A DNA stretch of 64,000 nucleotides from positions 197,540 through 261,539 of the forward strand of contig MNCI01002773.1 of NCBI GenBank assembly GCA_015680685.1, read 5' to 3'. Made by a program: the position numbers and the translations under genes. The notes below the pieces were generated by a model, which saw only the letters and a list, made by a program, of their open reading frames with translations, was not told the origin of the DNA and searched no databases. Below are positions 9,428 through 55,239 of the stretch, piece after piece. This DNA comes from Gnetum montanum. Taxonomy: Eukaryota; Plantae; Gnetophyta. The number at the start of each line of letters is the position of its first letter. The first letter of the stretch is position 1.

Positions 9428-9433
9428 GTTTTC

Positions 9434-19426: not shown

Positions 19427-19443
19427 CACTACTTCTAATGCCA
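19427..19443 (-). promoter_or_regulatory. PBS, tRNA-Asn type (element B)
   Basis: Minus strand TGGCATTAGAAGTAGTG just downstream of the LTR end at 19452. Confidence 0.7.
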
Positions 19444-19451
19444 AGAAAACC

Positions 19452-20700
19452 TATTGCAATCAAAAACCTCGGTCATTGAAAAAACCAAGGATTTTTGGTG
19501 CGGCAGTTTCCCAACCCCAAATCCTTAGGGCCTCCATGAGAAAAATGGGATTCGAGGTATCCTAGCTAGTTTGGCAGATCAACAAGGGACTTATGAAATG
19601 CAAAACGTGAGAATAAAAGGAAACAAAATGCAAAACTAATAGCAAATCTTAAAAATTCATAGATGATAAATAAATATATTTCATATATAAAACCCAAAAC
19701 TTAAAACTTCACTAAGAAAGAAAATAAAGAATATGTTCAAGAAATGTGTACAAATGGTGCCTGAGTGGGTAGTAAAAAAGGGGATTCACTAGTGTAGGAG
19801 TTCAAAGCCCATTGAAGTGGATGGGATTTGCTCCACGATCTAGGTACTAAGCCACTCTTGATGCTATTGAACCTTATATCTACTAGTTTGATCACTACTA
19901 GGCGTAAGAAAAGTGAAAAATTTGGATGCCAAATTTCTTCATGCTAGGGTTTGGGAATCCCAAAAGTACAGTGTTGACACCCAAAATTCACAAATCTCAA
20001 GGCTACAATGCTTCCATGCTAGGGTTCAAGAGAATGCAAGTATGGGAACTTGCAAGAACTCTTGAGTGCTTGAAAATGCCCCAAGTATGAAATTAGTACT
20101 TGGAAGATTGCTTGTATGCTCAATGAAAAAAATTGCTCAATCCTCAAAAATTTTGGAACATGTAAATGGGGTTTGAGGTTGGCTTTTATAGGATATTTGG
20201 GCCATGAATGGGGCTGCAAATTAGCTATGATTTGGCTGTGAAAATGGCTAGAAATTGGCTATTAAGTGGCTACAAATTGGCTGTGAATGGCTACAAATTG
20301 GCTGCCAAATTCAAGTTAGATGGGTGCCCAAATTTGGGGGGTTACCATACATAGTAGGTGCTTCCCCCCATGGCCATTACATTTACTATAAATAGTAATC
20401 AAGGTACACTTTCCGTGCTGGAGATGACTCTTCTATGCTAAACTCTCCACCATGCTTGTGGAAGTAGCTAGTTAATGTTCAAGTGCATGAAGTGATGAAT
20501 TTTGGGTTTTGTGATTTCCACTTTAGGGGATGCAATTCTTCACACTAGGGGTGAAGACTCCATGCTAGGGGGAAACTTCCATGTTGAGGGAAAAATATTT
20601 CCAGGTTGTGCATATTGTCTCCATGCTAAAGGAGGAAAGTTTCCAAAACTCCCACCTTTTCATGCTAGGGGTAGGTGAGATTTAACCCCTTGCACATGAA
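19452..20700 (-). repeat. 5' LTR of element B
   Basis: Repeat of 15607-16175; minus-strand CCTATAAAAGCC near 20181-20192 aligns with CATATAAAAACC at ~32343 in LTR of A; U3 has reiterated CCC(C/T)AGCATG. Outer end uncertain. Confidence 0.7.
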
Positions 20701-21471
20701 ATATACCTTGTTAGGGACCTCTAACCATGGTTTCATGTGAAATGTAGAAGTAGAGGCATTTGCTAGGGGCTTAGTAGCTACAAAAAGTATAATAATCAAC
20801 TAATGGTTAGAATGAAAATTACATAAAACATAGAATAACCTAAACATAAAACAAAATTAGAGCATACCTATCTTTGCCCTATCTATCTAGCCAAACTTAA
20901 GTGTAAGCCACCTCTTGGAAGGTTGCTTGGTGGCTTGTGCTACATCCTCAACTATGGGCCACTTTAACTTAGCTCTAGCTGCCTCATTAGCTTCAACACA
21001 TAATTCCTTGGACATCTCAATGTTTTCCTACTCAACATGAGGCTCAACCCCCATGTTGTGGGCACAATGCCTACCACTAAGTCCCTTAGTGGTAATAGAT
21101 AGTAATTCCCCAACATCCTCTGATGGGTTCTAGGCCTACATGGTTGGATAAATGTGCTTTATCCAATGCTCAGAGAGTTGGGATGGGTCTTCACTCATTT
21201 ATCACCCATACCTCCTCATCACCAAGAACTCTACAAATCTCCTCAAATATGCCACAAAGAATGCATAGTTCATGTATCATATTTTGGTGAGATCCTCTCA
21301 AAGTTTGATGATTTCCTCCCACAGGCTAGAGCCCAAGTGAGTAGCCTAGTTAAATCGAGCATCTTCTGTTAGGACATTCATCAAGGTCCATTCCTGGGCA
21401 ATGTTGATTACCTTCCTTTGCAATAGTAGCTTTGGAAAGGTATGGGATCTAAATAAGGGATATGATTCCCT

Positions 21472-21751
21472 TACTTCTGGCACTTAGAAATCCTCCAAGG
21501 TTAACCTAGAATGGCTACGACTACCACCCAACCATGATTCCACCTCCTCTCAATGGCTTGCCTTATTTCTGGCACTTAGAAATCCTCCAAGGTTAACCCA
21601 GAATGTCTATGGCTACCACCCAACCATGATTCCACCTCCTCTCAATGGCTTGCCTTATTTCTGACACTTAGAAATCCTCCAAGGTTAACCTAGAATGGCT
21701 ACGACTACCACCCAACCATGATTCCACCTCCTCTCTATGGCTTGCCTTATT
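21472..21751. repeat. Three near-identical tandem 92-bp copies
   Basis: cacttagaaatcctccaaggttaacc at 21481, 21573 and 21665. Confidence 0.95.
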
Positions 21752-24419
21752 TGCTAGTTTGGTGGCAACTCTCATCCCTTCAATGGGAATACTAAAGAGG
21801 TCACAACCAATATCTTGATTGATGGGCAAGGTGATTAATCATTATGAACCTTGGTAATGAACTTCTTGACTCCTTCATCAAGGGATTCAATAATATTTAT
21901 CATCTCAATAGCAAGGATGGTTGGGCTAGGTGCCATGAAAAGTTCAAGAAAACCTACATGAGCAATGTTTGCTTGAACATTTCTAGGTGTCTTTTCCATC
22001 AACCAACGCTACGCTGATTCAACTTCACTATATTTTAGGATGAACATCTACTTTAGGGTATCCTGAAACAACCAAGATGATCCTAGAGGAGGTGGAAGCC
22101 CCCACAAGACAACAAAAATGGCTAGTTGGCTTAGGCAAAGGCACATAACATAAGACCAAAATATGACAAGAATAAAAAATTAAAAATATCCTAATTCAAG
22201 CAATGAAAAACACTTAAAACCAAAATAGCATAGTATCATGTAGCCATGAAAATGTTAGTATAACATAAAAAGACAAAACAAAACAAAAATTCTTCCTACC
22301 TTTCTTCTTCTTCCTACTTGATGAGGGTTGTGTGGAGGTCCTAGCAATGGTGCCCTTTTCTGGAATGCATTTAGGGGCCACCCACCAACTATGGGCTATC
22401 TCAATGGCTACACACCTATGGAATACTGGAGCAAATATCTTAGTGTATTTATAAAAAATTATCATTTAATTGATCAACCACTATGATCCTGATTATTAGG
22501 CTTTTGGTAAATACACCCACTGTGCTTTGAGCCTTTTCAAAGGTTTAATCATTCTTGATCAAACCCTGGTCTCTAATCTTGTACCTACAAGATATCGATA
22601 AAATGAATAAGATAAGGAAGAATAGGTAAACAAAATAAACCCAAAATATGACAAAAAATCACAACTATACTTACCCTTCCAAATGGCACACTATGTCAAG
22701 AGGATTCCAGAACAATGTGTGGGTTTGGTGTGCCACCATTAGAGTGTCCTTAGCATTGTACTGAGAGAATTTTGGCCTGTTTAAGATTTGGGATAGTTGG
22801 CAAGTCCTGCTAGTATTCTTACTGTCCAACACTTCCCCTTCTACATGGGTCTTAGGATCATCCATTACAAACTAGATGATCATATTAGAAGACTGAGGTA
22901 GTAGGATCTTCACAATGACATTGATCATGTAAGGAGACAAGTGTGACCACATCATTACACTGAAGTTTTGCAAGAGGTAGGCTAAGAACTCTCTTGCCCC
23001 AGCTAGAACCACAATGAACCCTACTCCAAATCTTGGTTAGTTGGTGGAGTGTTGGGTTTGGGTTGTTGGATACAGCAAAGTATTAATGTTGGTGGAATCC
23101 TACAACCAAATTCAATGATTTTATAGTCATTGGAATCCTTAAATCATAATCTAAACACCCAAGAATAGAAATCATAACAATGTTTAGTCACTATTACAAA
23201 AAATGCTGCCAAAGTGACATGAACCTAGTAGTAATGGCAAAACCCTAATTCATGCGAGTTTAGTAAATATTTTTCTAAAATTAATTACATTCCCAAATTT
23301 AGTGATTACAAGACTATTGGAATCCTTTAAAAAGACCTACAAACTTGTAACTTGAAAACATGGAAATTCAAAGGTATGTTTGTAGAAACAATTCATGAAG
23401 TGACATGAAAAACTAAAAAATAGCATGGAATTACACTTACATCAGTTAATGAAAATAGTTACCTAGCATTAACTGCAAACTAGAATTACATGATTCCACA
23501 GCCATGTAAAACCTCAAATCCTAAATTAATAACCCATAACCTCAAAAATTCAAAATTACTAGCCATTTTCTTAAGAAAAAATTTAGAAGTGGTATTGCTT
23601 TTTTAGGAAAAATAGCAAAAACATTTAAAATTAACTAAAATTTTTTTTATAACCTTACATAAACCAACTCTAACACCAAAACAACAATAAAAACACATAA
23701 AAACCACCTAGAAAAACCATAGTATTTTCTTAAAATTTGAATTTAATCAACATATTAACCTAGATATGAGAAAACACCTAGGACATAGGCAAGGAAAAAC
23801 CTCAAGAAACACAAAATCGTCCAAGAGTAGTATACCTAGGGGTGATCGTAGCAAATCCTTGCCCAATCATGAGCCTTGGCATATGGGAGAGGTCCTTGTC
23901 TATTGTGTCAGCATCTTGCATGGTAGGGTTCTTGATGATGCTTGCCTCCCTCTTCTACATGGCAGTGTACAACATAGAAAACCTTTTAAAAATTTGGAAA
24001 ATTTGAGTGGTAGGACTACTCTTGATTGGTGCTAGATGAGCAACACTAGAGGTTGAAGGGATTCAAGTAATAATGTCTATCAATGCTCTACATTGGTGTA
24101 CTATAGGTAAGAAAATGAGTTGTGCAAATGATTGTTCCAAAAAACTGCAAGTAAAAATTAAGTTTCAACCTAGGCACCCCCTTTGAAACCTCTATTACCA
24201 TATTCACGCATTGAAACTCATGGTGCACTGATAGTTCAAAGAGGGGAAAGCTTAAACAATGCTGGGATGATGGAAGTTCCAAAACAAAGTTTAAAATTTT
24301 AATTTGGGTGGGCCCCACAAGGAGCCTCCTAAGAAAAGTGGGTTTAACACTTTAAAACCTCCTCTACACTAGGTTTAATCCTTCTTAAAACCCCTAAAAA
24401 TATTTTTCAACCTCATACC

Positions 24420-27099: not shown

Positions 27100-30000
27100 T
27101 AGAGTATGAGTACCTGGGAGAAAATCAATTTGCCTTTGAGCCTAAGTCGGCCCCATGGTAATGTTGAGTGGTGTATTGATCCAAATTACCTAGATCTTAA
27201 GCTTTAGAGTCTCTTTGACCACATACCCTCAATAGAAAAACCTCTAGAGTGGCTAGAAAACCTAGTCAAAACCCTTGGCCTAGAGGCTAGCAACATTACT
27301 AAAGACTCTTTGGCTGAGCTTCCTATCATGATACATAGTGCTGAGGAGAAAATGCTAAAATTAAATTTTTCACTAGAACCTTAGTAGGCTCAAGACATCA
27401 CCAAGGTCCTCCAAGATAACATTAAGGTCTTTGCCTAGTCATATGAAGATTGGTTGAGTCTTAACCCATGTTTAGTCTAATACAACATCATACTTGATCC
27501 TAGCATTAGACTAGTCAAGCAAAAAGTTCGTAAGATTAGACTTGATTTGGCTCTAGCAATTCATGATGAAATCACAAAACTATACTAATCTGGTTTCATT
27601 AGAGCTATTGATTACACAAAATGGGTGTCTAACATAGTGGTTGTCCCTAAGAAAAATGGGAGTCTACACATTTGCATCAATTTTTGCCTAAATAAGGTAA
27701 CTATCAGAGAGGATTTCCCTTTGCCTAGTATTGATCAATTTATCGATACTATGACTAGACATACCTTGTTATCCTTCATGGATGGGTTCTTGAGATACAA
27801 CCAAATTAGGATTGACCTAGAGCATTAACTTAGTATAATCTTCATGACCCCTTGTTGTACATTATTCTATACTATGATGTCCTTTGGCCTAAGGAATGTA
27901 GGAGAAACCGACCAAAGAGCTATGACATATATCTTTAGTGACTATATTCTAGGTTTACTTAATGATTACATAGATGATATATCTATTAAGTCTAAAGTGG
28001 TTGATAAACATGACCTTGACCTTGTGCTTAAACGATGCTTGAAGTATGAGCTTAGGCTCAACCCTAAGAAGTGTGTCTTTGGCATTAAAACTAGTAAGAT
28101 GCTTAGCTTTGTAGTATCTAAAGTAGAAATACGTGTCGATCCTAATAAGGTTAAGGTCATATCCAAGTTGGCAATACCAAATAATCTTAAGAAGCTTTGG
28201 GGATTGCAAGGCTGATTACAGTTTATTCATAGGTTTATTACTAGGCTTACGAATAAGTTACAACCCATGCAACACTTTCTTAAGAAAGGAGTTCACTATG
28301 AGTGGATGGCTTAATGCCAAGAAGCCTTTGAAAAATTTAAGCAAGAGTTGGCACAACTACCAACATTCTATCCTCCACAAGAGGATAAACCTTTTTACAT
28401 CTACCTTGCTATCTCTAACATATCTATTGCCTCTCTACTCTATTAGAAATGAGATGATGGAGTGGAGTTACTGTATACTACTTAAGTTATGCATTAGTTG
28501 ACCATGAGACCCAATACACTAAAGTATAGAAGTATTGTCTAGCCCTAGTCTTCTCATTGAAGAAATGGAGACACTACCTCTTTAGAAGCCAAGTCAATGT
28601 CATTCGCAAAGATAATGTGCTTAGAGCCATAATGACCAACATTTAAGAAAGTAGTAGGATAGCTCATTGGAAAGCCATAATAGTAGAGTTTGACCTTGAT
28701 TACATTTCTCAAGCATCAATGAAAGATCAAGCTATAGCCACATAACTCATTGTTTCACCAATAGAAGACCATACAACCATAGACCCTAAATTTCCCAATT
28801 AATACATCAACATTGTTAGCAATGTACCTAAGGGCTATGAGGTGATCATGCACTTTGATAGAGTTTCAACTATCCATGGGGCTAGTCCTACTACCATCAT
28901 AACATTTCCATTTGGTGAAATCCACCATATCAAATTTTCTTCTACCAACAATGTATTAGTGTATGAGGATTTGATCAGGGAAATGATGGTAACTTGTGAC
29001 CTAGGAATAAAATGCTTAATGATTAAAGGTGATTCACAACTTATGGTCAACCAAGTAACTGATGTTTATGCATGCAAAGACAAACATTTGCAACCTTACT
29101 GTGACCTAGGAAAGAAACTAATGAAACAATTTACAGACATCAATATCCAACATGTGCCCTACAATAAGAACATCACAGTCGATGCCATTATGATGCTAGC
29201 CCTCAATGTGACATCAAATGTGTATAGCAAGTTATCTTCCTTAATTGTGAACTATGCTATTCCCATCATGCAAGACATTAAAAATGACTCCATAGCCATA
29301 GTTCATACTACTTCTGCAAAGGAGTAGTATGAAGACATCAAATTTTATCTTATGCATGGTGAACCTTCATAAGGTTTGATTGCTACTTACAAGAATGTTG
29401 TATGTAACTAATCAAAACAATATGTTATCATAGGCAATAAGACATTATGTTGATGGTCCTATGATGACATATTGTTATTTTACTTTGGAAAAATTGAAGC
29501 CCTCACAATCCTAGAGCAAGTTCATGATGATGTATTTAGAAGACATATAGGACCTAGAGCCATGGCTATAGAGATATGATGATTAGGCTATTATTGGCCC
29601 TATATGAAAAGAAATTTCCTCCAAAAGATAAAAACTTGTGAGACTTGCCACTAGCATAGAAACCTTATACACATGCCACCAACTAAGTTACAAACCACTC
29701 AGATAACTTATTCATTTCAATAATGGGGGTTGAATATCATTGGATCCATAACACCTAAGTCTGTCGTGGGGCATCTCTTTATCATCACTGGAATCAAATG
29801 CTACACAAAGGAGGTTGAAGCTATTCCTCTGAGGAAGAAAACATCTCAACAAGTCTGTAGATTCATATTGGAAAACATAGTAGCTTATTTTGGCATATCC
29901 ATAACCCTAGTCACAAATAATGGACCACAATTTAGTAGCCAAGAGACAAAAAAAATTTTCATGAGCTAGGCATTAAGCATTTCTTCTCATCACTATACTA

Positions 30001-30551
30001 CCCCGAAGCTAATGGGCAAGCTGAAGCAAGTAGTAAGGCCATCATAAACTTGCTCAAGAAAATGCTAAATAATAGCAAACACAAGTGGCATGAGCAGTTT
30101 GTCCATGCACTTTAGGCCTATCAAATGACTTTATGAATGGCAACTAGTGTAACTCCATATAGCCTAGGTTATGGTTCTAAAGTTGTTTTGCCTCTTGAAT
30201 TGCAGGTGGTATCACTCCAATTAGTTGTATCAAACTTCATCAATGATGAATAGAACAAATATCTACACACCATGGATGTAGACTCGGCATAAGAGTAGTG
30301 AGTGTGAATGCTTGCTCATGTCGAGTGGTACCAAAAGAGGTAGAAATGATAACAACATCATAACCTAAACAAGTTTAAGATCAAGTAAGAAGACTTGATC
30401 CTCAAAGCTTTCCATGTACATGTGAACAAATTCTTAGCCAACTAGGAAGGGCAAGGTCTATGACAATAGAGCCATTAGGATAGCAAACATGAATGGGAAC
30501 AAGTTGGCTAACCTAGTCAATCATTCCTAACTAAATCACTACTACATGTAG
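27100..30551 (+). pseudogene. pol: pol of element A: RT, RNase H, archaeal-type RNase H, integrase
   Basis: WVSNIVVVPKKNG..ICINF..LNK...DFPLPSIDQ; SFMDGF.RYNQI; YIDDI; LRLNPKKCVFG; aRH; integrase WG.NIIGSITP, TNNGPQF, YYPEANGQAEA; no chromodomain seen. Start approximate. Confidence 0.92.
28842..29327 (+). pseudogene. Additional archaeal-type RNase H domain (Tat hallmark) between RH and INT
   Basis: MHFD...STNNVLVYEDLI.....DLGIKCLMIKGDSQLMVNQV..VY.CK...L..Y...HVP..KN..VDA. Confidence 0.9.
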
Positions 30552-31597: not shown

Positions 31598-32919
31598 TGT
31601 TGTAACCTTTTGACATTGTAACTTTTACCCCATGAAATCTAAGGCTAAAATCTCATTGTAAAAATGTGAAAATTGTAATCCCCAAGATGAAATTTCATGT
31701 ACTTTAACTTTTGGAGTAGAAAAAATGCATCATAAGTTATCATAGCCTTAACGCCCAAGTGAAAAAAGTCATATTGTATTCATATTTAGGCTCAAGGAGT
31801 CAAAAATGTCTTTTGGACTTCAAAATTGACATTTTCATGGGTTTTGTGGGGGGTATGACCTTTGCTACGCTAGAATTATATTTTCTTAATGTTGGGGGGT
31901 TTAACTCTTGAACCCTCAACATGGCTCATATAACCCCAATATTGCTCCTAGAGTTCAACATGCTTAGCATTGGTCTAGCAATCCCAGTGTTGCTCTAGCA
32001 ACTCCAGTGTGGCTCCAGCAACTCCAGTGTGGCTCTTGTAGCTCTAGCATGGCATCAACAACCTTAACATTAATCCTACACCCCCAATGTGAGTTTCATA
32101 CCCCTAGTGTGATTTCTATAGGCCCAACATTACTTCTAGAAGGCCAGCATGGGTAGAAGAAGACAACATGAATAAAATTATCATTTACTATTTCTGGTAA
32201 CTAGAGTGATTCTGGTACTTGGGGGCATCAAAACTTACCATACATGGAAACCATGTTGGATTTAAACGCCTGCAACACCTCCATGTAACATCAATTTTTT
32301 AGTAATTAGGTAGAAATTTATAGTAAAAGCTATTGCCATGAAACATATAAAAACCAAGCTTCAACACCATGAAAATGTTCCACCTTTCTGGCATTCATGG
32401 GCTTTGAAAACTCAGTGCAGATGCAAGGCTTTTGAAACAACCATAGTGTGGGATCTATAGTCATTGTAACAATTTTTATACCCTTGAGATTGTATAATAT
32501 TTTGTGGCAATGTTGAGCAACCTAGGTATTGAAACTCCCAGCATGGAGTTGACTGTGGCATTCAAGGCTACTAGCTTCAATAGTCTTTAAACCCCCATTG
32601 AAGTAAACCCTTTGCATCCCCAAGCACTCCTTGTACACATCTCTAAACTCTCTTTATTTTTTATCATAATAAATTTTACAGATCTATTTGTTGTGCAAGT
32701 TATTGTTGATTTATTTTTCATTCTATACATTTATTTTTTCAGATCTACATTGCATTTTATTTTGTTTTCCCTATTTACACTCTCTAAGTCCCTAGGTGAT
32801 TAGCAAGACTATCTAGGGTGCCTCAGATCCTATTTTTCGGATGTCCTTGGGATCTAGGGCCAAAGATATTCTACGTGGGATCTTTGATTTCCCAGTAATC
32901 AAATTTTCTAGTCACGACA
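31598..32919 (+). repeat. 3' LTR of element A (~1.32 kb)
   Basis: Begins TGTTGTAACC after purine-rich AAGAAAATGCA (decayed PPT), ends GTCACGACA; TATA at ~32345; ~20-bp CCAG(C/T)(G/A)TGG tandem units at 31910-32150. Start moderately certain. Confidence 0.75.
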
Positions 32920-33396
32920 ATGACAATCCTTACATGTTTTCTAAATAAATTGAAGTTCTTGTGACCAACATATTACCAAGGTTTTGTGTTTTATGTATGA
33001 ATGTATGCATTAGTTTTGAAAGTCCAATTTGGACGATTAATAATAGAAACTTTTGTAGCAAAATCTAATATACAAGGATTTTTTTCTTCTTAAATATTCT
33101 TAAGCTTAATGTAAATAAGATTATCTTGGCTTTTTAGAGGCTTTTTTGTGTTTGTGTTTAGGAGGAAATTGGAGGATTTCCCATACCAAACCCTAGTGCT
33201 GAAGCTATTTTCTACCAAGTCTTTTATGTGTGGCACCTAGAATCCATTATGATGGTTGAATATCTATATTCAACATATCTTATCAACAATCTTGGCATCA
33301 ACCCATCTCCATTTATAATTTCAATGCTATAGAGCAAGAAGTTTTAGGGTTTTCTTTCACAACATTCAACACAAAGGTTTAAGACTTTCGCCAACC

Positions 33397-36300
33397 ATGG
33401 TGAGGAAGATCAAGTCAAGTAGTAGGAATCTAGTTTTGGATGAGGTAGAGGAGGAAACTTGAATTATTTAAAGACTTAAGAATCCAATTTCAAGGAAAAG
33501 ATCTTCATCTATATCTACTAGGTACAAAGTTCTCATTATTTTTTCTAGTTTTTCAAAGTTTTATGCAAACATTTTGCACCTCTAGGCATATCTAGGTTGA
33601 AATTTTTTGATTTGCATGTGCCAAATTAAAGGTATAGGCTTTTTGATTATATTAAAATTAATATTTTGAATTTTGATATTGGATTGAGGATGATTTGGAT
33701 TTTTTCCCACACTTGTACCTAGCATTTTTACCCTATTCTTGGTCAATTTTTCCCCCAACTTTGAATTTTTTCTAGACTATATATACTATGATTTTGGAAT
33801 TCTAACTATATAGATATGTTATTATGATTCTTTGGTCACACAAGAGGTGGAATTATATTTTTAGTATTTTTTATGAATTTTTTGGATTTTTTGCCAATCT
33901 AATTTTCAACATTTTGGGCAATTTTTGTTAAAATTTTTAAGTATTCCAATGGGAAAACTAATAATGTTTGGGGTTTTGTAATCACATGTGGTCATAATTT
34001 TGGGTCTCTTAGGAGAGTGGAAATAGTATATAAGGTCTTTGTGTGAATTTTGAAATTTTTTTACAAATCTTTCTAAGAGTGTTTATTGTAGTTGATTCAC
34101 TACAAATAGAGTTTTTGATCAAAATTTTGGTTGAAAACTAGCATAATTGTGATTTTTTCTACATTTGAATTGTAGCATTGATGGTGAATTTTTATTTTTG
34201 CAAACATGTTCATTGCACCTATTACTAAAAATAATTTTTAAGGTTTTTTTATAGCCTCCAAGATCTATATTAGTCAATTTGGATTTTATTGGCATAATTT
34301 TGGTTCACATGGCATAGATTAACAACATTGAGTACTTAGGCTTGTTTGTGAATATTGTGAAACTTTCCAAGTATCATGGCAAATGTGTAGTACCTATTAG
34401 ATAAGTCATATTAACATACAAGGGGTTTTAGTGCATTTTTTGGGGAGATGTCGTAGCGTTTATGCTCCAAAAGCCAAGAAATCCTATACTTCTTATTTTC
34501 ACTTTTCCATCATCTCCAATGTTTAAGCTTGTATGACCTATTTGATCATTGGCTTATGAAAAATTCCATTACTTAGGCCCAAATATTGTCATTCTTGACC
34601 TCTAATTTTGCCAAACATTGATTTCATATCAAAAGCTTGTAAAAATGCTCGTTTCAATGTTTTACAAGCCAATTGTTTGTAAAAATGTTAAATTGTTTTT
34701 TTACTATGTCATTGGAAGTGTAAAAGCTATATTTCTGGTTTATATTGTGAAGGTAATTACATTGGTGTATTTGGTTATTTTTTAAGTTTTAAATTTAATG
34801 ATAACGTTATCATGCTAGTGGTTATTTTGGTATAAAGTTTGTGAATTTTTGTTGAAATAGTTATAAGGTTTTCTATGTTCTAATGATTATGAATTTCTGC
34901 TATATATAGGGCCTTGCTAAAACTTATTTTGATTGTGGTGGAGCTGCTTGGAATCCTATGTTGCACTGGGACAACCACACAAAAGAGTCTAAACCTAAAT
35001 TTGTGCATTGATAGGCATTTTCTGATATGGTTTAGACCTAGTGCATGAGAATTCTTAACATACTTGCTCTACCACTACAGTGTGATCATATGGTCATACT
35101 TGGTGATGGATATTGCCTCAATCATCATAGATACTCTCTTGGAAGGGTCTTCTGCCCACATCTTGAAGTTCATAATTGATGATCATGATCCTCAAAGGGA
35201 TATAGAGCATAACGAGAGCTCATTTTTAGAGGGAGTTAGATAGTTAGCCAAAATCTAGGAAATTCCTATGTATTCATAATACAATTTTGACAACACCTTG
35301 ATGGTAGACCATAGGATAAACAAACTCTTCCAAAATCCTCTAGGAATTGTCTTCTTGCTAGAACCATAAGTTTGGTTTTAAATTATCATCTTTGGTTGTT
35401 TTTTAGCTCTAAGGTTGTTTAGTTCTAATTTTTTTGATTCTTTGTTTGTTCGTAGACATAGGGTACCACCTAAAGGGTTGGTAAGGAATGACAAAACCTT
35501 AGCTATCACTAGTACAACCTTGAAAAAGTTCAAGAAAGGTGAGGTCATTAGAGTGAAGGTTCTTAGTCAGCTCAAAGTTGAGTTTAATAGATACTTCATG
35601 AGATATTCTCATGTACACAAAACAAATTTACCCACAAACCATGTACACAAATGGTTGACTTGTTTAGAATTAGGAGCTCCTACACTAGCTCATCATAAGG
35701 TTGTGGCCTTTCCTAAGCCTAGTAAGTAAAATTTGTTTATTATGGCCAACATTTTTCAGTTTTTTATTTTTTTTAAAATGTTTTTGTACTTTCAAGAGGC
35801 TAACATGTTAACTATGTTGTATTTAAGGTTCTATGCGTAAGTCTATAGTTCACGTGACTATTTTAGGACATTTTGAGGAGAAAATTCAACTAAGTGGGGT
35901 GAAGTAGACTTTGGACAAGAATGGTTGGTAGAAAAGATTCCTATGGACATCCAAAAAATGCTTACTGATGTAGGTTTGTGTGATTTGTTCATGTTGCCTA
36001 GTCCAATGATCCCACCTATTAAGATATTGAATGTGATTGACTTTTTTGATGTGGAGATTACCAAATTCATTACTTGCATTCATGGCCAACCTATTATATT
36101 GAGCATTAAGGCATCCATATTTAATAATCTCTTTGGTGTACCTTCTAGTGGTGCCAAGGTTATGACTAGAGTAAGAAAGGATACAAGTTATAGAAAGAAA
36201 ATAGAGGCTTGGCTTAACTCTTCTCTAGGTGCAACATTAAATTTTAACAATTGTATAGTTGAGAAAGCTAAAATACCTATCCAATTTTCCATGCTAATCC

Positions 36301-38550
36301 TATGTTACTATCACAAAAGAAAACTATAGGAGTTTCGCATGCTTGGATAATGAAAAAGGTGTTGACTAATGATACTATGTTTGATTAGGCTACCCACTTG
36401 GTCATTAGCTTGAGAGATGAAATCAAAAAGGTTAACAATAACCTTGACAATATGTATCATGTGCACTTTACATTCTTCTTTCAATACCTTAAGAGGTTTA
36501 TAGAGTTCTTGGTGTTGAAGAGAGATGGAGAAATGGTTGCACATGATCATTTCCAACTCTCTAGGCCTTGGAATAATCATATCACTTAGGTTATATGCCA
36601 TCAAGATCCACTAGTTGAGGAGATAGGAGAATCATTGGTCATTACCACTATGCATCTTAATGATTCACATGGTTTGCCTAGTTGTTCCCTTAGTAGCATG
36701 GGGATTGAGCCGTATTCTATGCATGGAACTACAAAGAAGGCCAAGAGGCCACACAAAGAAGAAAATGGTACTACCAAAAAGAAGATAAAGAGGCCATGTG
36801 TTAAAGACAAGGTTTAAGTTCCTAACAAGCAAGAATCCAAGAAGATGACCATCAATCTCAACATGGTAAATTAAGATGTTGGAGGTATGTAAGAATTTTG
36901 TGATATGTTTTTAGTTTTAGTTTTTAGCTTTTAGTTTATTTTTGTTGTATTTTAAGTTATATTTTTATACTTAGATGTTTGCTAATTTTTTTATCTTTTA
37001 TTATTATTTTTTGTTGTAGGGAGGAAGTAGGAGTTGCTTGCCAAGGTTACTATGAAGGAAGAGCAACAATGTAGGAAAGAGAAGGAGAGGATATCTACGG
37101 AGGCTTTCAATGTGTTGGGTTCTATCTTAGGTGATTTTATTGTAGAGAGTAATCCTCCAATATATCTTTCTCATGATTTTCTTGGTGTGCTCTAAGTCTT
37201 ATTTTATCTCTTGATTTTTATTTATCTTTGTTGCAGTTACTATATAATCTTTTATGGTGATTATAGAGTGTGGATCTTCACCAAAAGCATTTACATCGAC
37301 ATTCCATTCCAAATCATGGGTGAAAGCCCAAGAAAAGCTAGAATTCATGACAAAAATGATGAATGATATGGTAGATAGATTGTAACAAATAGCTCTTGAT
37401 GTTGGTAAGAGATGTGTTAAAGTGTTTTATTTTATATATTTTGATTTCTATATTTTTGTTTTCATGTTTTTATGATCATAGTACTCAATGTTTTCTTTAA
37501 AGGGTTTTAATTGTTTTGATATATTTTTTTTTGTGTTATTGCAGTTTCCAAAATAAAATGGAACTCCTCATGAGACTTTGAATTTGATGAGTACCCAGCC
37601 TTGCCCTTAATGTTGAGAATTTCCCACATAGGTTATATGAAGGGGCCATAGAATGTGCTACATCTTATGCAAAAACATTCTAGGAGGTCCAATGTTTAAA
37701 TGATTTCCTATGGGAGGAGATGGTGGCATTAAGAAAGCAAAACAAGGAGCTAACTAATAAAGTCAAGAGTCTCGAAGATCATAAGGAATTCATAGAGACA
37801 AATGTGACCAATAGGAACTCCTTACAAACTAAAGAGATAGAGTGTTCCTACTATTGGAGCACTATTTAATGTAAGATTTCTCTAGCCAAGAGAAATATGG
37901 AAAAAGATATGCAAATGGAGCTCTTAGTTGGAAAGTCCAAAGAATGGCACAATTATTATGCATGGGTGTTAGAGTGGGTCAAAAAACAAAAAGCTTAGAA
38001 GTAGATATATAAGGTGGGGAAGGAGAATTAAATGAAATCATGGCATGAGGAAGGCATGACACAACATATGTATTAGTTATTTATTTAGGGGATAGGTGTA
38101 GAGGACATTTACAACATGTTTGTAAGATCCATGGTTGCTACTAAGTCTCCTGCTTTTCAAATCACTACTGCATCTAGGAAGACCACCACTATTTAATTTT
38201 CCCATGCTTCACCTGAGTGGATAGGCATAAAGAGGAGAAAGGTCTTGGTAGGAGTAGATCTAGGAGACACTGATTGGACAAACTTGAGTGTAGAATAAGT
38301 TCTTCACAAGTTCGAAGCTAGTCTCCATAGATTTACAACTGAAGACATAGCTCCTGATTAAAAATATTTTAAGTTTTTATGTTATATTTTTTATTTTTTA
38401 TTGTTTAGTTTTCTATGATTTATAGTTATGCTTTGTTCATCATGATTACTAATGGATTACATGTTTTGTTGCTTATAGGCCTTAGGTGATGATGATGAGA
38501 ATGTTGAGGACGATGTTGTTGATGATCCTCCTTCTCCTTCTATAGGTTAG
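33397..38550 (+). pseudogene. Antisense multi-exon accessory gene of element C (best preserved copy): FCP1/NIF-like pseudo-phosphatase, plant-transposon/PMD-like domain, coiled coil
   Basis: Exons 33397-33521 (125 nt), 34910-35365, 35456-35721, ~35830-36884, 37020-?, 37237-37404, 37545-~38360, 38479-38550 (72 nt). Exons 1-3 join in frame. Exon 2: KLILIVVELLGIL...WFRPSA(R)EFLTYLLYHYSVIIWS...VR(Q)LAKI(W)E..YS(Q)YNFDNTLMVDH..KLFQNP; stops are mostly CGA>TGA, CAA>TAA, TGG>TAG types. Confidence 0.8.
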
Positions 38551-39269
38551 TTCTAGCATACTTGTTTAGCCTATTATGTTCTATTATTTTTTTCCACACT
38601 ATTGGTCTTGTTATTTTCTTGGCTATCATAGCCTTGGAGACTATATTATTTTTTCCTTTATGTTATCATGCTGTATAGTGCAACTATGGCTACTATTATA
38701 TTTCTTGTTGTTGTTTTCTATCACATAGTGTGATTGTGACTATTGGTATGAACATTCTAGTTATAAGTTAATTTTTTTTAATATTTTATATTTTGTAGTT
38801 TATTTTATGTTTTCTTGCATAAAAGACAAGTTTAAATAATAAGGCTATGAAGTAAAGTTTGGTGATAAAACAATAAAGGCATAAGATAAGGCATAACAAG
38901 TTATAGTATAAACATAAGAAAGATACAAAAAGGGAGGCCATAAGATTACTAGTTTTAGGCCCTTGTAGATGACTAGTTTAAGACCGTGGTAAGCTGCATT
39001 TTTACTTTGAATTTAAGTTTTTTATTTTTTATGCCATTTTATAGTGTTATGTAAACACAAAGGAAATAGGCATAAATTGTAAATTTGACATGAAAATGTA
39101 GAGCAACGTGATGTAGTAAAATAGTAAATAAGGCATAATAAAATAAAAAATTGTAAAGTAAAACAAAAATAAGTAAATAAGAGTTAAAACTAGACTAGAA
39201 AGTAAAAGGCTACATAATATGACACAAGGTTAAATGAATAAGTGATGTAGTCAATCGCACAACTATTTT

Positions 39270-42200
39270 CTAATCTTTGAAAGACTATAGAAAGTGTAAG
39301 GTCTCTATTGCACAATTCTCTACTCTCCATTCCCTTCAATCACAATGTTCAATGAAAGCTCTTTCCATGATTCATTCATGGCCTCATCATTTTTGATCTT
39401 GGATTGGTTGATGTCATTATTTTCCTTACATCATTTTCGGTGATAGGAGTTTCTTCTTGAAACTCCACCTTAGATCCCTGCTCTACGTCAACATTGTTGA
39501 TAGATAAGAAGATTGTGCTATCTACATAAATTATAATTTTACCTCCCTCATAAGGTAGGTAAATTTCTTAATGGATAAGAGAAGAGACTACTCATAATTT
39601 GGCTAACCATGGCCTTCTTAGAATTAGATTGAACCCTAATTTCTCTTCCACTACTAAAAAATTGGTAGATGTGGGAAATTATTCCCAACTGATGAAGTCT
39701 AGAGAAATAAATCTTCTCATTGATATTCGTGACCCATTAAAGGACATAAGAGTAGAAGTGGAAGTATTTTGGATATGTTCTAACAAGTTTAAATGATTCA
39801 TGATGGGGAAGGATATAACATTTTTTGTCATCCCATCATGAACATACACCTATTGTACCTTGTATTTACCAACCCTTATCATTATGAAGAAGGGGATTCT
39901 CAACATCTCACCACTTTACGTGTTGGCCTTTACCTCACCATCACAAAATGTTATGATAGTTGGCTTCATTTCTTTCCTAGGTGAAGGTGGCACCATCACT
40001 ACATGAATGAACTCCTCATTGGAAGCAATATCTTCACTGACAAGAATGGAAGTCAACATCTTAACTAAGTCTTGACAGTGAGCAAAGGATGTCATCACTA
40101 GGTTGTATAAGCTTAAAGAGGTGTTTTACTATTTAAGCGAGAGCTTAACCTACTTCATGAAAATGATGAAGTCTTTGTTATTATTCGATGTTTTTTTTAT
40201 TTCCCTTGAATTCCTCCATTCTACCTAGGATTTTCACTTCATATTTCAGTGTCTATTATTTAGGCCCCTTATCTTTCTCTTATTTTTGGCTACCCTTGCT
40301 AGGTTGGCTTGTTGAAATAGCTTGAGCATTGGTATCTATTGGTACTGCTAAAGTTAGAGTAAACTTCAGTGAGCCTACTTCATTCCACATCTTTGGTTAT
40401 TTATTATACTTAGTCTTAGGCTTTAGATTTGGCTTCTTGCATTATTTAGAAGGTGATTTATTATTATCTAGTTGCAAAGTAGCTAAAGCATTGGCTGCCA
40501 TAGGAGGGCATTGATCAACCTAGGTCACAAGTTCATCGGTAGTGGGAGGGGGTACCCTAATGACAAACAATTTCTTAGGAGGTGTAGGTGGTGATATCCT
40601 TATAACCAAAGGAGTTATTAAACTTGTGGAAGTTGAAATTCATTTTATCATGAGGAGGTATCATGATCACAGATGACTCCCTAGATGGTTTAGGATTATT
40701 GCTAATATTAAATGTAGTGATCTTATACTAGTCATTGTTAGCATTTAGTAGGTTCTTATATACTTGCATGTTCTAGTTCTAGGGCCTAATGAGATTAGAT
40801 GTGTCTAAGACTAATTTACCACTATTTATCATTTTTACAAATAATCTTTTAAGACCAAGCAAAAATCAATATCATGACTAGGCAATTGATAGTTGTGGAA
40901 AAATCAATCTAATTTTAAGTATTTAGGCATAGGTGGATCATCCTTTGTACCTATAATGGGATCTTTAGCAAACTCACATAGGCAATCATGCCTCATATGG
41001 GCATTTTTGGTTATATATTTCTATTGTATGAAACCACTTTTGAGCACATGATCAAGAAGCTTAAACAATTTCATAGGTAGCTTTGTGTACTTGGACTTGT
41101 CTTTTCTTTTGAAGTATGGCCTAGGTGAGTTGCAAATGGAAGCACATGATGTTGATAGTTAAGTGGTTGTGGTAGGCACCTTTGATTATGTTGTCTTTGG
41201 CTCCTATGTTATTTTTGTTTCTTTGTCCACAATGGCCATGGCTACATAGTTTTGTTTCCCTTTATCTCTATTCTTTCTTGTGTGCTAGTTCTTCTATGTT
41301 ACGTATGCTAGGTCATTGCTAGATTCTACAACATCTTCTATGTTTTTAATATGGAAAAAGGCTTGGCTAAGTAACTATGGGTCTAGGTAGTATAACTTGG
41401 ACTTGATGAAATCATTAACCCCCCCTTTGAAAATGACCAAAAGGTCTCTTTTAGAGATGGACTTGGAAATTTTGTCAAGGATGACATTTCATCTCTATAT
41501 GAATTTTTGAACAAGTTTAAGGGCCCCATGTTTGATTTTCATAAGCTATTCTATTGTTGTATCAAGTTTCAAATTATACTTGAAAGGTTAATGATTTATG
41601 AAAGTAAGTCATCTAGGGAGGTGGTGGAGCCTCTAAGTGGTGCATGGTACCAATCCAAGGCTTTTCCGGTTAGCAACATAGAAAAGATATGAATCACAGC
41701 ATGGGTTCAAGCTTGTGACAACAAGCTCTCTGAATGGAAGGTAATGAGATGTGAGTTAGGATCATCCTCACCATTATACTTAGTGAAATGAGAAATAGGG
41801 ATGCCTGTGGGAAGAGTTATTTTCTAGATAGTAGAACTAATAGGATCATACTAATAGAAATCCATATTTTTTCCCATCTAGGTGGTCAAGGCCTTAAGCT
41901 TCCACAACTCTTTAGTGAGGACCTAGATCATTTGAAAGGCTTAATCTAGGTCTTGAGGCATTCCTATGGGTTGGGAAGTTTGAACTAATGGCTACAAACG
42001 AGGTTGGATGGCTTGGGACCATGCAATGGACATCAGTATAGATGGAAGAGTTTGTGTGGTCATGGTAGTAGGGGGGTTAAACAAGGAGAAGGAAATTTGT
42101 GTTGGAACCTGGGAAATAAAGGGGACAAAGAAGGTGTGAGAGGCTTGTGAAGCCTAGGATTTCAAAGAGGACCTCACTTGTATGATGAAAGGAGTTGGCA

Positions 42201-47406: not shown

Positions 47407-48725
47407 TGTTAGAGTATATTTCTAAGTTGAAGTATAATCATTAGTTTCTTAACTTAATCTATTAGTATTTATGAATAGTCATGATGGTTTAGTGAAGATT
47501 CACAACTTTTTACGAAGAAGCCCACAAGCTCTCACTTCATAACATAAGGTGATAAGAAGAAAGAAAAAGATAAGAAAATCAAACGGAATAAAGTGAAGAA
47601 ATATCTAACAATAAGGAATAATAATGGTTCAATAGTCATAACAATGTTCATAATACATAAGTGATTATGAAGTATAATGAATTATAAAATTATGAAGAAC
47701 CAAATAAGAGTATGTAGTAGTAAAGAAAGATGTTACAAAGCTCAAGAGTCATAACAAGATCCCAAACTCTAGAAACCAAAAGGTAAAACAATGGACTTGA
47801 ATTTAAGAAGATAATAAAAATTCAAGTTATTAAATAGGTCAAGAAGATCAAACAATGATTCATTCATAATTTGGTCTAGTTTCCTAAAGAGGGAGAGAAT
47901 ATCATCCAAAAGATTACAGCCGAATCATAGAAGAAAGACTACAAAGAAGAGATAGGCTACGATTAAAGTAGTAGCCTATAACAAGTTAAGCAATGGATTT
48001 CTAAGGAACCCAAGAAGGCCTAGCCCAAGTAAGATAGAGCAACTAGAAAAATTCTCATCATACCTATTACAAGTAATAAGAAAATGTATACATCCTAAGG
48101 ATGTAGCCAAGAAGAAGAAGAAAGACTTACAAAGAAGTATTTCATAAAGTCTAATGAAGTTAAGTCAATAATAATTAATGAAGTATGAGAGAAGTTTATG
48201 AAGTTAAGTTTAGGAGGAACTTAACAAAGTATAGTAAACCAAGTCCAAATACAATAGTTCATAATACAATAAAAATTTTGAACAACAGTCATAAGTATAT
48301 TATATCTTATGATGGAGAAGTCAAGATGGACCAAAAGAAGATGCATCGCAAGGAAGAGCAACATCACCGAAACACAAGAATTTCTTAGCAAGACATAACC
48401 TTGAGATACAACAACCCCAAATATGATGTTATGAATTCCCCAAATAAGAAATGAATATCAAGTTATGGAATTAGTACAATGCAATTTTGTTCATCATAAG
48501 AGGATTTGTAAGTAATCAAGTCAATAAGACTTATGATACTTAGAACTATAAAGAATGACAAAGAGCAATCATCATCACGAAGAGAGCTATGATCTTACAT
48601 CTCCATAATATTGATATTACTACTAGTTATGGGAAGTGAATCTCCTTGTAAAAGATCTTGAGACAACAATGTTGTGTTACGAATGTTAACAAACTCTAAC
48701 ATGGTAGTACATCTAAAATATAACA
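47407..48725 (+). repeat. 5' LTR of copia-type element
   Basis: Direct repeat with 50490-51399; TG...CA ends. Confidence 0.88.
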
Positions 48726-50489: not shown

Positions 50490-51399
50490 TGTTAGAGTAT
50501 AAGTATAACCATTAGTTTCTTAACTTAAAGCTATTAGCAGTTATGAATAGTCATTATGGTTCAATGAAGATTCATAGCTCCTTATGAAGGATAAAAGACT
50601 ACAAGCTCTCACTTCATAACATAAGGTGAGAAGAAGAAATAATAAGATAAGAAGATCAAGTGGAATAAACTAAAGCAATAAGGAATAATAATGGCAAAAT
50701 AGTCACAAAAATATTTATAATACATAAGTGATTACAAACTACAATAATTTGTAAAATTACAAAGAATCAAACAGAGTATGTAGCAGTAAAGAAAGATGTT
50801 ACAAAGCTCAGAAGTCGTAACAAGATTCCAAACTTTAGAAACCAAAAGTTCAAAGAAAGAACTTGAATGGAAGAAGGGATGAAGAATCCAATTTTCTAAA
50901 TAGGATAAGAAGATCAAAAAGTAAGCCATTCATAATCTAGTCTAGTTTACTAAAGAGAAAGAGAAGACCATCCAGAAGGTTACAATGGAATCATAAAATA
51001 AGGAATATGGAGAAGAAACAAGATATGATTAAGTAGTTCATAGAGATGTAGCTAAGAAGAAAAGACTTATGAAAAAGTATTTTGTAAAGTCCATTGAAGT
51101 TAAGTCAATAATAACTTAATGAAGTATGAGAGAAGTTTGTGAAGTTAAGTTTAGGAGAAACTTAATGAAGTATAGTGATCCAATTCCAAATACAAGAGTT
51201 CATAATACAATACAAGTTATGAACAATAGATGTAAGTATATTCTATCTTACAATGGAGAAGTGGAGATGAGCTAAAAGAAGAGGCATCACCATGATGAAC
51301 AACATCATTGAAAGATAAGAATTTCTTAGCAGGAAAGAACCTAGAGATACAAAAAGATCAAAAATGATGTTACAAATTACTAGAATAAGAAAGGAATAT
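50490..51399 (+). repeat. 3' LTR of copia-type element (interrupted)
   Basis: Colinear with 47407-~48458 up to GAATAT, then switches to TGATGAG. Confidence 0.88.
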
Positions 51400-52399: not shown

Positions 52400-55200
52400 T
52401 GTCTCCTTCTTCTTATGAGAGTGCTTCACCGACTAGGTCTGATACCATGAACAATCGGAGGTGAGGTGTACATGATGATCTGCTAGTGCCCTAATAGTTT
52501 TGCATGGTATATGCTCATCCTAATGAGTGTGTACCAGATTTTACCTTTATCCTCCACTAGGATGAATAGCTACGATGGCATGATTTAGAAGGTAACATAG
52601 TGCTACCTCCTGATAACTTAATCCCAAGCATGCTTCTTCATGCTCTCACACGAATTGGTATGCAACACTTATAGTCAGAGTACATTGTGCATGAACAAGA
52701 CTCGAGAGAGTATCAACCCACGGAGGCACAACACTAGAGGGATCTACAACAAAAGAGATATTATGAATCCATGAAGGGAAAGTAGTCTCAAGATGTCCTA
52801 TGTGTCCTAAGTGAAAATGATGGTGGTGAACCTATCTTGGGAGGTTTTCCACAAAATGACTTTCCTCTCTTTGACTTTGGTCAAGGATATGGGTATCAAA
52901 ATCTTCACTCAACTATTCATAATCCAGGTTTTGGTACCAACGAACAAAAAAGGCTTGAGAAAGGAACATGAATGCATGATAATGACAGACATCATGATCG
53001 TAACCACGACCAAGGCTGTGACCACCAAAGAGAGGGTGGCAGGCGCCGACATGGTGCTAGTACTCCTTCCTCTTCACCTTCATCATCTTCTTCCTCATCT
53101 CCTTCAAGATCTGAACGTAGTCGTAGAGGGCGAGACCATGAGGACAATGGTAGGAAAAATTGAAATCACCAAAAAAATAGTAGAGAAAGGGGATGATGGC
53201 ATTCTAGAGAGACACAACACGAAAGAAGGGAGAGTAGGGAACGACATAGGCATCATAGACACCATAGGCAGCATGATCATGATGAACCCCTACTCACCAC
53301 CCAAAGTATGTTAAATATAATAGAGGTTGTTAGGATCCCAACAAGGCACAAGAAAGATAGTAGGATCAAAAGGGAGAGTAGGGAACAATGATAGGCAAAA
53401 TTGAAATCACCGACAAAATAGTAGAGAAAGGGGACGATGGCATTCTAGAGAGACACAAAACGAAAGAAGGGATAGTAGGTAACAACATAGGCATCATAGA
53501 CACCATAGGTAGCATGATCATGACGAACCCCTACTCACCACCCAAAGTATGTTAAATATAATAGAGGCTATTAGGATCCCAAAAAGGCACCAAAAAGATA
53601 GTAGGATCAAAAGACTAGACATGAATAACATCTCACGATTTGAAGGGGGATACAATGCTGATCCTTAAAACCATTTACAAGCATTCCATGACGCATGTAC
53701 CTTGTAGAATATAGAAAATGAATGGAAAAAGATAAAGTTGTTTCCACAGATACTAATCAAGGAAGCAGAAAGTTGGTACCAGTCCTTAGAACTAGAATCC
53801 ATTCATCGATGGAGTACCATGTTGGAGTTATTCAATGATAAGTATCAAACATACTCCCGAGTGTCCAACCTGCATAAGCAAATCCAAGGATGGAAACAAG
53901 GAGGCCATGAACCCTTGGATGCTACCATGGGCTGATATTATTCATTATTACATCGTTGCCCTAGCCATGGTTACTCACAAAAGGAACAACTACATCACCT
54001 TATAGATGGGCTTAGATACAAAAAGTGAAGAAACCTTGGGACTTATGCCCAAGGAAGGCTATCTAAGCTCAGAGCCCATCAAATACAAAGATTGTTGGAG
54101 AAAGTTGCCAAGGATGAAGGCAAGTTGAGGAAAAGAGAATGTGTAGAGGAGTACAACAGAGATCCTTCCCTCCAAAAGAAGGAAATTAGATTTTTCAAAG
54201 ATAAAGAAGAGTCACCACTTGAAGAGATGGTGAATAGAAAGACTTTTCCCATTCAAAAATTTGTGTTAGAAGTATCGACAAAGGTGGATCAAATGTGGAA
54301 CTCCCTAAATGACAAATTTCAAATTATCCTAAAAATATATTTGAGGAGTATAAAGAACAAAGTAGTGACTAAGAGAGAAGAAAAAAAAGAAGTTGAGTAT
54401 GTACGTAACAAGGGTAAGGGTAAGGTTACCATCATTGAAGAGGTTGTGGATTCAGAAACAAACAATGATGATGGATGTGAGATATGCCAATATGACCATC
54501 CTAAAGGATGTTGCCTAGTAGTGTCACATCTGCAAGAGTATGGGGTGTATGCACTAAATCGATGATTAAACAGATGACAAACACCCATAAGGTTACCTTA
54601 TCCTTAAGGTAATCCAATGCAGTTCTACCAACCCTTGACATATTATCCAAGTGGAGCTCCACCACAACCGAATGAATAGTATCAACAATGGCAACATCCA
54701 CAGTCATGGGGAATGCCACCACCATGTCAATAGTATCCTTACAGTCAACTTGATCCATATGGGTATTACATTCAGCAGCCGATCTCTCCACATGAGTCTA
54801 CTAGTCATGATGCTCTCCAACCTCACTACCAGACCCCCAAGTACTATAGAACTTCTTCTTCTAGGGGTGATGCTCCACATACACACTACCATTCTCATCT
54901 GTCTACATCTCTTCCACCCTCAGCTCCATTACCACCTACTCCAACTATGTAGGGTGAGCTTCCTACCTAGCTGTAGCAACGTAATGCTACAAGGGCTATC
55001 AATCTTTAATTTATTGTTGGTTTGAACAACCAATCAAATAAGAGATCTTTCTTTAGAACCAATAGTCCAACCAAGTCCTTACAACCACAAGCAGCTAATT
55101 ATTCAAACATTTCATCATCATTTGAATCTTCAAAGCTTCCTTCAAATCAAAAATTGCACTCAATGCACATTGTCATGTTAACCCATGCCATCACTAATTG
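52400..55200 (+). pseudogene. gag: gag with long His/Arg/Ser-rich N-terminal region (decayed)
   Basis: LFPQILIKEAESWYQSLELESIHRWSTMLELFNDKY...GWKQGGHEPL; CPSHG; CEICQYDHPKGCC. Boundaries approximate. Confidence 0.75.
53151..53610 (+). repeat. 220-bp tandem duplication with 20-bp templated filler
   Basis: 53151-53370 repeated at 53391-53610; spacer agggagagtagggaacaatga copies ~53227-53245. Confidence 0.85.
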
Positions 55201-55239
55201 GATTAACGCTAGCCATCTTCTTGGAAGTTCCCTTATTTA

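Follow-up and report, generated by a model that had tools for sequence, protein, structure and literature searches.

The window analysed here is a stretch of 64,000 nucleotides of the Gnetum montanum genome (contig MNCI01002773.1, positions 197,540 to 261,539 of the forward strand). It consists of plant-type DNA with a GC content of 31-41% and is full of decayed long terminal repeat (LTR) retrotransposons. The subject of this work is a gene with several exons at 34911-38325 on the plus strand, which runs antisense to retrotransposon genes and whose first conserved exon resembles the phosphatase domain of the NIF/FCP1 type. A second, diverged copy of this gene is present on the minus strand of the same window; the two copies are referred to as c1 and c2 in the following. 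Their first conserved exons were located as listed here.

34911-35366, plus strand: NIF/FCP1-like HAD-domain exon of c1, identified by translation and profile match; an AG precedes 34910
22671-23036, minus strand: NIF-like exon of c2, identified by a profile match at 22704-22994; a GTAAGT donor follows directly after it

A domain of FCP1/NIF type had been read in the original prediction from the second of three proposed exons. All of the peptide strings quoted for that exon are present in the translation of 34911-35366 (+), which contains four in-frame stops at exactly those places where stops had been bracketed. For a NIF reference set, 38 viral loci were then retrieved by means of a degenerate DNA pattern that encodes the canonical motif I, and their open reading frames (ORFs) were extracted. 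Ten of these viral ORFs, scored by Pfam as PF03031 with 86-126 bits, were used for a local NIF profile. With all filters off, this profile was run against the whole window translated in six frames, in which stops had been replaced by X. Only two places in the window scored above zero, namely 35013-35339 (+) with 28.3 bits and 22704-22994 (-) with 13.4 bits. As a control, the best of 300 shuffled windows reached 5.2 bits and the reversed window -2.2. A second profile, built from 120 other NIF proteins, detected the same two places with 18.9 bits for c1 and 6.0 bits for c2, and in pairwise phmmer comparisons the X-masked c1 exon matched single verified NIF members with up to 28.6 bits. Furthermore, when the 64-residue piece of c1 encoded by 35049-35240 was compared to the ESM Atlas, NIF was found in 29 of the 30 nearest clusters (score 0.92; 188 shared features, recognition 3335). 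The NIF exons of c1 and c2 themselves share 44% amino acid identity as determined by tblastx.

The empty Pfam and PDB searches of the exon pieces would be in line with a chance resemblance of the motif order in decayed, AT-rich sequence, but two independent profiles, the shuffled control, the homologous place in c2 and the language-model search leave such a coincidence with a negligible likelihood. Thus, as judged by these sequence comparisons, the NIF/FCP1-type homology of the c1 exon is real, and the domain assignment of the original prediction is upheld. Word-indexed protein searches returned nothing for the 64-residue NIF piece and, for the viral NIF alignment, close viral and metagenomic NIF proteins only and no plant ones; viral contigs searched for related loci contained none. 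The UBLCP1-like or the plant 'DLNGLL' branch of NIF proteins may be the nearest to the exon.

A tblastx comparison of 33000-39500 with the window revealed eight colinear coding blocks with 26-50% amino acid identity between c1 and c2, those of c2 being located on the minus strand between 22991 and 14785. Over the 552 aligned codons of the measured blocks, the identity by codon position is 0.59/0.70/0.41, and the proportions of nonsynonymous and synonymous differences (pN and pS) are 0.35 and 0.73, respectively. This corresponds to a dN/dS of roughly 0.2, a value that is only rough because the blocks were picked by protein similarity, and the pS of 0.73 means that synonymous sites are saturated. 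Since eight colinear blocks show codon periodicity, the sequence common to c1 and c2 was a protein-coding gene under purifying selection while two lineages diverged. The periodicity and the dN/dS of about 0.2 between the copies also bear out the earlier claim that the module was maintained in at least two subfamilies. At present, however, numerous stops and one or more frameshifts are found in each of the two copies; both are dead and decayed after insertion.

Beyond the NIF exon, the following parts of the gene were distinguished.

33397-33521, plus strand: exon 1 of the original prediction; two in-frame stops and no counterpart in c2, an ATG in good context and a GT after 33521
35367-35456, plus strand: first intron-like gap of c1; 90 nt with 57% T, starting with AT and ending with AG
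35457-35726, plus strand: exon 3 of c1; open over 90 codons, conserved with 22583-22455 (-), no Pfam family
35877-36583, plus strand: middle region of c1 with unrecognised fold; an open stretch of 150 codons at 35877-36326 and a block at 36290-36583 in another frame
36695-36888 and 37287-37403, plus strand: weakly conserved blocks of c1 with a T-rich gap in between
37404-37543, plus strand: intron-like gap of c1 with canonical ends; 56% T, G/GTAAGA at the start and TTGCAG/ at the end
37544-38325, plus strand: C-terminal conserved blocks of c1, with a coiled-coil-like stretch at 37684-37866
14785-22583, minus strand: remainder of c2 as colinear tblastx blocks, interrupted by a nested element (element N)

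Three exons had originally been joined in one frame. The arithmetic of this join holds, with 34910 and 35456 as the third bases of split codons, but the two stops in the proposed exon 1 had gone unmentioned, and nothing matching this exon is found upstream of c2. Exon 1 was thus rejected as a part of the gene, since the sequence gives it no support. The donor placed at 35365/35366 is non-canonical in c1 (AT) and a GT in c2. In c2, the twin of the first gap comprises 87 nt with 56% T and GTAAGT...AG ends, and thus has the same place and nearly the same length as in c1. Four gaps of c1 (35367-35456, 35727-35876, 36889-37286 and 37404-37543) contain 46-57% T as compared to 20-34% in the coding blocks, and these T-rich gaps cannot be aligned between c1 and c2. 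The gaps at 36084-36289, 36584-36694 and 37978-38007 have an exon-like composition and are probably poorly conserved coding sequence. Because the T-rich, unalignable gaps differ in this way from the exon-like ones, the gene is predicted to contain at least four introns. The earlier description as an intron-containing gene therefore agrees with the T-rich gaps and with the GT..AG ends in c2, but no splice joint was observed in RNA.

The middle blocks of c1 share 42-44% amino acid identity with 22035-21844 (-) and 21444-21151 (-), and the C-terminal blocks share 45% and 31% with 15519-15133 (-) and 15102-14785 (-), respectively (tblastx). The block best conserved between the two copies is 37591-37977. 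Within it, 37684-37866 yielded weak Pfam matches to coiled-coil families only (E 0.006-0.04). PMD (PF10536) was not matched in Pfam at E up to 10 by stop-free pieces of either copy, which are decayed and at most 150 residues long. No Pfam family was matched by the middle region, and its comparison with the PDB gave nothing meaningful, the matches being four Anoctamin-1 chains with E 0.7-0.9, and an AlphaFold (AF2) single-sequence model of the 150-residue stretch is unusable with a pLDDT of 42. In c2, a tandem triplication (unit about 92 bp, 94-96% identity) is located between two coding blocks at 21466-21752 and accounts for part of the length difference from c1.

The retrotransposon sequences around the two gene copies are as follows.

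9045-9430, no strand assigned: candidate 5' LTR of element A; left copy of a direct repeat of about 380 bp, 81% identity to the right copy
10919-13715, plus strand: gag-protease of element A; protease at about 13100-13480, AAGG(T)AATG context at the end of the ORF
15609-20001, minus strand: nested small LTR element N inside c2; LTRs at 15609-16185 and 19454-20001, gag-like block at 16198-18054
27100-30217, plus strand: reverse transcriptase (RT), degenerate RNase H, added RNase H and integrase of element A, identified by Pfam; ORF traced upstream to about 27.1 kb
32547-32920, no strand assigned: right repeat copy, which forms the candidate 3' LTR of element A and is located some 500 bp ahead of the originally proposed exon 1
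39444-42147, minus strand: gag-protease block of element B; 64% nucleotide identity to 10919-13619, convergent to c1

On the plus strand of element A, Pfam detects RVT_1 at 27844-28212 (E 3.5e-6), RVT_3 at 28842-29324 (37.3 bits, cut-off 21.6) and rve at 29724-29966 (31.1 bits), so that the genes appear in the Tat-type order RT, RNase H, added RNase H (RVT_3) and integrase. An added RNase H between RNase H and integrase serves as a criterion for the Tat lineage (PMC6317226). The protease of element A and the C-terminal protease motifs of element B were read by eye, as Pfam does not cover this protease type; a word-indexed protein search with the protease ORF returned nothing. Both the fused gag and protease and the place of the added RNase H group the family with the angiosperm Tat clades. 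Element N, with LTRs of about 570 bp (80% identity by blastn) and only a gag-like block that is 66% like the gag of element A, is a non-autonomous relative of element A, its host. The length of its LTRs makes short LTRs plausible in the group of element A.

Both c1 and c2 are convergent to a gag-protease block, with the same spacing of about 1.1 kb. The antisense orientation of the gene towards gag-protease, as stated in the original prediction, hence holds in two diverged elements, in element A with c2 and in element B with c1. In element A, the only one visible in full, c2 is located in the 13.4-kb interval between gag-protease (13715) and the RT block (about 27100), which amounts to about 9 kb without element N. 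One repeat pair with 81% identity encloses gag-protease, c2 and the block of RT, added RNase H and integrase together. Right after the protease ORF of element A (13700-13725) a donor-like AAG/GTAATG is found, the context of which is kept in element B (39330-39350, -). This site could be the donor at which an Ogre-type intron is spliced from the sense strand.

The gene might also be carried by a shorter non-autonomous element composed of LTR, gag-protease, antisense gene and LTR, in which case the RT and integrase at 27-30 kb would come from another element. The gene would then not reside inside the polyprotein but would be one of the usual antisense ORFs that precede the 3' LTR, as known from Retand, Grande and Tat lineage V. 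Element B, which consists of gag-protease and the gene with no RT in the window, is compatible with such an arrangement, and so are element N as a gag-only derivative of the same family and the weakly defined borders of element A. However, no LTR-like repeat separates c2 from the RT of element A, gag-protease, c2 and RT-integrase are enclosed together by the only repeat pair, and the ORF on the RT side begins without a gag or protease of its own. We therefore regard the shorter element as rather improbable. 

It is very improbable that the gene is a NIF-family gene or pseudogene of the host that happens to neighbour retrotransposon debris and was copied together with its surroundings by an old inverted segmental duplication. 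A segmental duplication would not enclose c2, gag-protease and RT-integrase in one repeat pair, and gag-protease and the gene keep their order, orientation and spacing at about 36-43% nucleotide divergence. These observations stand against the facts that the copies are inverted and only 10 kb apart, that the expressed diverged relatives described below could be host genes, and that no homologue from another species was obtained.

The original prediction had furthermore listed the FCP1 motifs in their proper order. This order is indeed beyond chance, but motif I is devoid of its Asp and motifs III and IV are off the family pattern. In the profile alignment, both c1 and c2 retain the RP...EFL helix as well as motif II, a hydrophobic strand that ends in W-S; the Ser of this motif is part of IIWS in c1 and MMWS in c2 and aligned to the WT(A/S) of verified NIF members. 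In the aligned column of motif III, Arg (c1) and Cys (c2) are found where the family has Lys. At motif IV, c1 has DH and c2 has AH as compared to DD or DN in the family, the His being common to both copies. For motif I, DxDx(T/V), neither copy contains an Asp, and the two copies differ there. As judged by spacing, its place in c1 is taken by VVELLGIL, about 32 residues before RP and beyond the reach of the local profile alignment; the counterpart in c2 is frameshifted and likewise free of Asp. Nowhere else in the NIF exon is conservation as low as in this N-terminal stretch. The LVLDEV followed by EEET in the originally proposed exon 1 (33430-33447) was considered as HAD motif I and rejected, being one of seven relaxed matches in the window, too far from RP and not kept in c2. 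A motif-I-only profile and regular expressions for motif I also gave nothing convincing.

Because the Asp of motif I is missing and motifs III and IV depart from the family, an active CTD (C-terminal domain) phosphatase is unlikely, at least in c1 and c2. The absence of the Asp from both copies and the shared His in motif IV favour a non-catalytic pseudo-phosphatase as the ancestor, as far as can be inferred from two dead copies. Alternatively, the accessory protein could be an active NIF-type phosphatase in intact copies, the losses described above being the result of decay after insertion. This would agree with the many stops and frameshifts in both copies, with the Ser of motif II and the initial Asp of motif IV that c1 retains, and with an N-terminal stretch that aligns so poorly between the copies that the ancestral state is unreadable. 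We nevertheless judge it unlikely, given that no Asp occurs at either motif I position in either of the differing copies, that the second position of motif IV is His in both and motif III is Lys in neither, and that conservation is lowest at motif I within an exon that was otherwise under purifying selection.

Expression was assessed with three oligo-dT runs and one other RNA run of the same species; the libraries are not strand-informative. Reads that are 85-95% alike gave partial matches at 35892-35928, 36298-36330, 37735-37796 (depth about 14) and 38013-38051. They fall on the most conserved coding stretches, and their loose ends are homologous and in frame. The c1 copy is silent in the sampled RNA, and diverged relatives of it are expressed as poly(A) RNA, since the poly(A) reads with 85-95% similarity run on as diverged in-frame sequence. 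Either element-borne genes or domesticated host genes could be the source of this RNA. A read pile at 38256-38432 in one RNA run was dismissed as evidence for c1 expression, as it is a T-run artefact.

Overall, the best explanation of these observations, to which we assign a probability of roughly 70%, is that 34911-38325 (+) is a dead copy of an accessory gene belonging to an Ogre-like Ty3/gypsy family of the Tat lineage. This gene is multi-exonic, antisense to the element genes and adjoins the end of gag-protease. As far as its sequence can be classified, it is made up of a first conserved exon derived from NIF/FCP1/SCP, a region of unrecognised fold and a coiled-coil-like tail.

Several results weigh against this explanation. 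With respect to the domain, the Pfam search for NIF (PF03031) that had been proposed as a check of the exon was run on stop-free pieces only, with NIF pieces of at most 64 residues, and gave no match for any piece of either copy. PDB sequence searches with the exon pieces and with a two-row alignment returned nothing relevant, and the c2 piece had no match in the ESM Atlas. The 150-residue open stretch of the middle region retrieved nothing but two spurious repeat proteins from 1.84 billion representative proteins. In the four RNA runs, reads at least 95% alike were absent from c1 save for low-complexity T-runs, and there were neither reads on the NIF exon nor splice joints. At the borders of element A no primer binding site (PBS), polypurine tract or target-site duplication was recognised, the repeat of about 380 bp being only 81% identical, and element B shows no RT in the window, with no trace of it left of element A. 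The missing catalytic residues could reflect decay and not the ancestral state because both copies are riddled with stops. Finally, an enlarged sense intron, as outlined in the next paragraph, would rest on one conserved donor-like context and on the analogy with Ogre.

If the gene belongs to an Ogre-like element as proposed, it would be transcribed from a promoter of its own on the antisense strand. In the sense genomic RNA its introns would not act as introns, so that they would persist through retrotransposition. The sense transcript, in turn, would lose the whole interval between protease and RT as an enlarged Ogre-type intron, and the spliced RNA would give rise to Gag-Pol. The protein product may be a non-catalytic pseudo-phosphatase that acts as a phosphoprotein binder or scaffold, may dimerise via its coiled coil and could serve the expression of the element or its escape from silencing. 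An action on the phosphorylated CTD of RNA polymerase II (Pol II), as put forward in the original prediction, is pure inference and, like a link to the MAIN/MAIL1-PP7L silencing module, speculation. In its most far-reaching form, the model would describe an abundant Ogre-like family in which the protease-RT intron has become a compartment of about 9 kb that houses a complete antisense gene with introns. The product of this gene, a NIF pseudo-phosphatase combined with a transposon-type middle domain and a coiled coil, would serve as a decoy or adaptor and thereby favour transcription of the element or blunt silencing. Its targets would be phosphorylated host factors, for example the CTD of Pol II, IV or V, or MAIN/MAIL1-PP7L as the PMD-phosphatase silencing module. 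We consider this extended model rather improbable.

Elsewhere in the window, a third and different Ty3/gypsy element is present at 52600-62200 (+), with RVT_1 at 56181-56501, RT_RNaseH_2 at 56681-57103 and rve at 57781-58245. Tandem repeats are located in its upstream part at 53144-53613, and the upstream region is repeated at 3581-5196 and, in inverted orientation, at 8-1476. Where the window is richest in AT, two direct repeats of about 1 kb (47430-48458 and 50501-51399) with 80-82% similarity lie 3 kb apart; either an old tandem duplication or the LTRs of a small element may account for them.

In comparison with the NIF, FCP1, SCP, Dullard and UBLCP1 phosphatases (PF03031, HAD superfamily), the exon described here has the same core, from the RP...EFL helix via the W-S strand to the strand before motif IV, and differs from them by the lack of the motif I Asp and of the motif III Lys and by DH or AH in motif IV.

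Among retrotransposons, the closest comparison is with Ogre elements (Tat lineage IV), in which a gag-protease ORF and an ORF for RT, RNase H and integrase are split by a spliced intron and which possess an extra ORF with PMD and a coiled coil (PMC6317226, PMC4408406). The split between protease and RT is the hallmark of Ogre, and the gap there has a mean length of 274 bp with no gene inside (PMC6317226, PMC4408406). The family described here resembles Ogre in the protease fused to gag, the non-coding separation from RT, the place of the added RNase H and the coiled-coil-like end of the accessory gene. It differs in that the interval measures 13.4 kb, about 50 times the published mean, and contains an antisense, multi-exon, NIF-like gene. 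Moreover, the extra ORF of Ogre is in sense orientation upstream of gag and contains PMD, whereas the gene found here is antisense and contains no PMD according to Pfam. Ogre is characterised by long LTRs and a PBS complementary to tRNA-Arg; the candidate LTRs of element A comprise only about 380 bp, and no PBS was recognised beside them.

Antisense extra ORFs are present in Retand, Grande, RIRE2 and Tat lineages III and V, where they are located between pol and the 3' LTR and contain TRP28/Transposase_28 or PMD; a review from 2020 states that none of the antisense extra ORFs had been reported to resemble other proteins clearly (PMC7264820, PMC11963269, PMC4408406). The gene in the window shares with them the orientation antisense to gag-pol, the conservation within a lineage and the presumed promoter of its own. 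In contrast to these ORFs, it is placed between protease and RT, has several introns and contains a NIF-like domain. In the text of a screen for non-canonical domains that covered 121 angiosperm genomes, PMD, G-patch, AIR1, DUF1409, YgdH, L26, B3, ArgoL2 and 2-ODD are named and NIF is not (PMC9289625), and our full-text literature search yielded no paper linking a NIF/FCP1 domain to an LTR retrotransposon. Thus, neither a NIF-like accessory domain nor the placement between protease and RT is described in the plant-transposon literature searched.

Extra ORFs occur widely among Tat, Ogre and Retand elements, and no function has been established for them in two decades. A recognisable enzyme-derived domain would provide a concrete handle on this question, namely for phosphopeptide binding and activity assays and for the identification of partners. 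Among LTR retrotransposons the placement would be a novelty, and an antisense gene in an interval spliced as in Ogre would, if true, make the expression of Gag-Pol, of the genomic RNA and of the accessory gene depend on a single splicing choice. Since the copies in the window are dead, the value of the finding lies in the family and not in this locus. 

The capture of an enzyme domain as such has a parallel in Ogre-like elements of orchids, which acquired a 2-ODD (m6A demethylase) domain (PMC9289625). In both cases an element of the Tat/Ogre type would have captured a host enzyme domain and kept it through amplification. The orchid elements differ from the family described here in that the domain is another one and is encoded in an additional ORF, and in that their polyprotein is unsplit.

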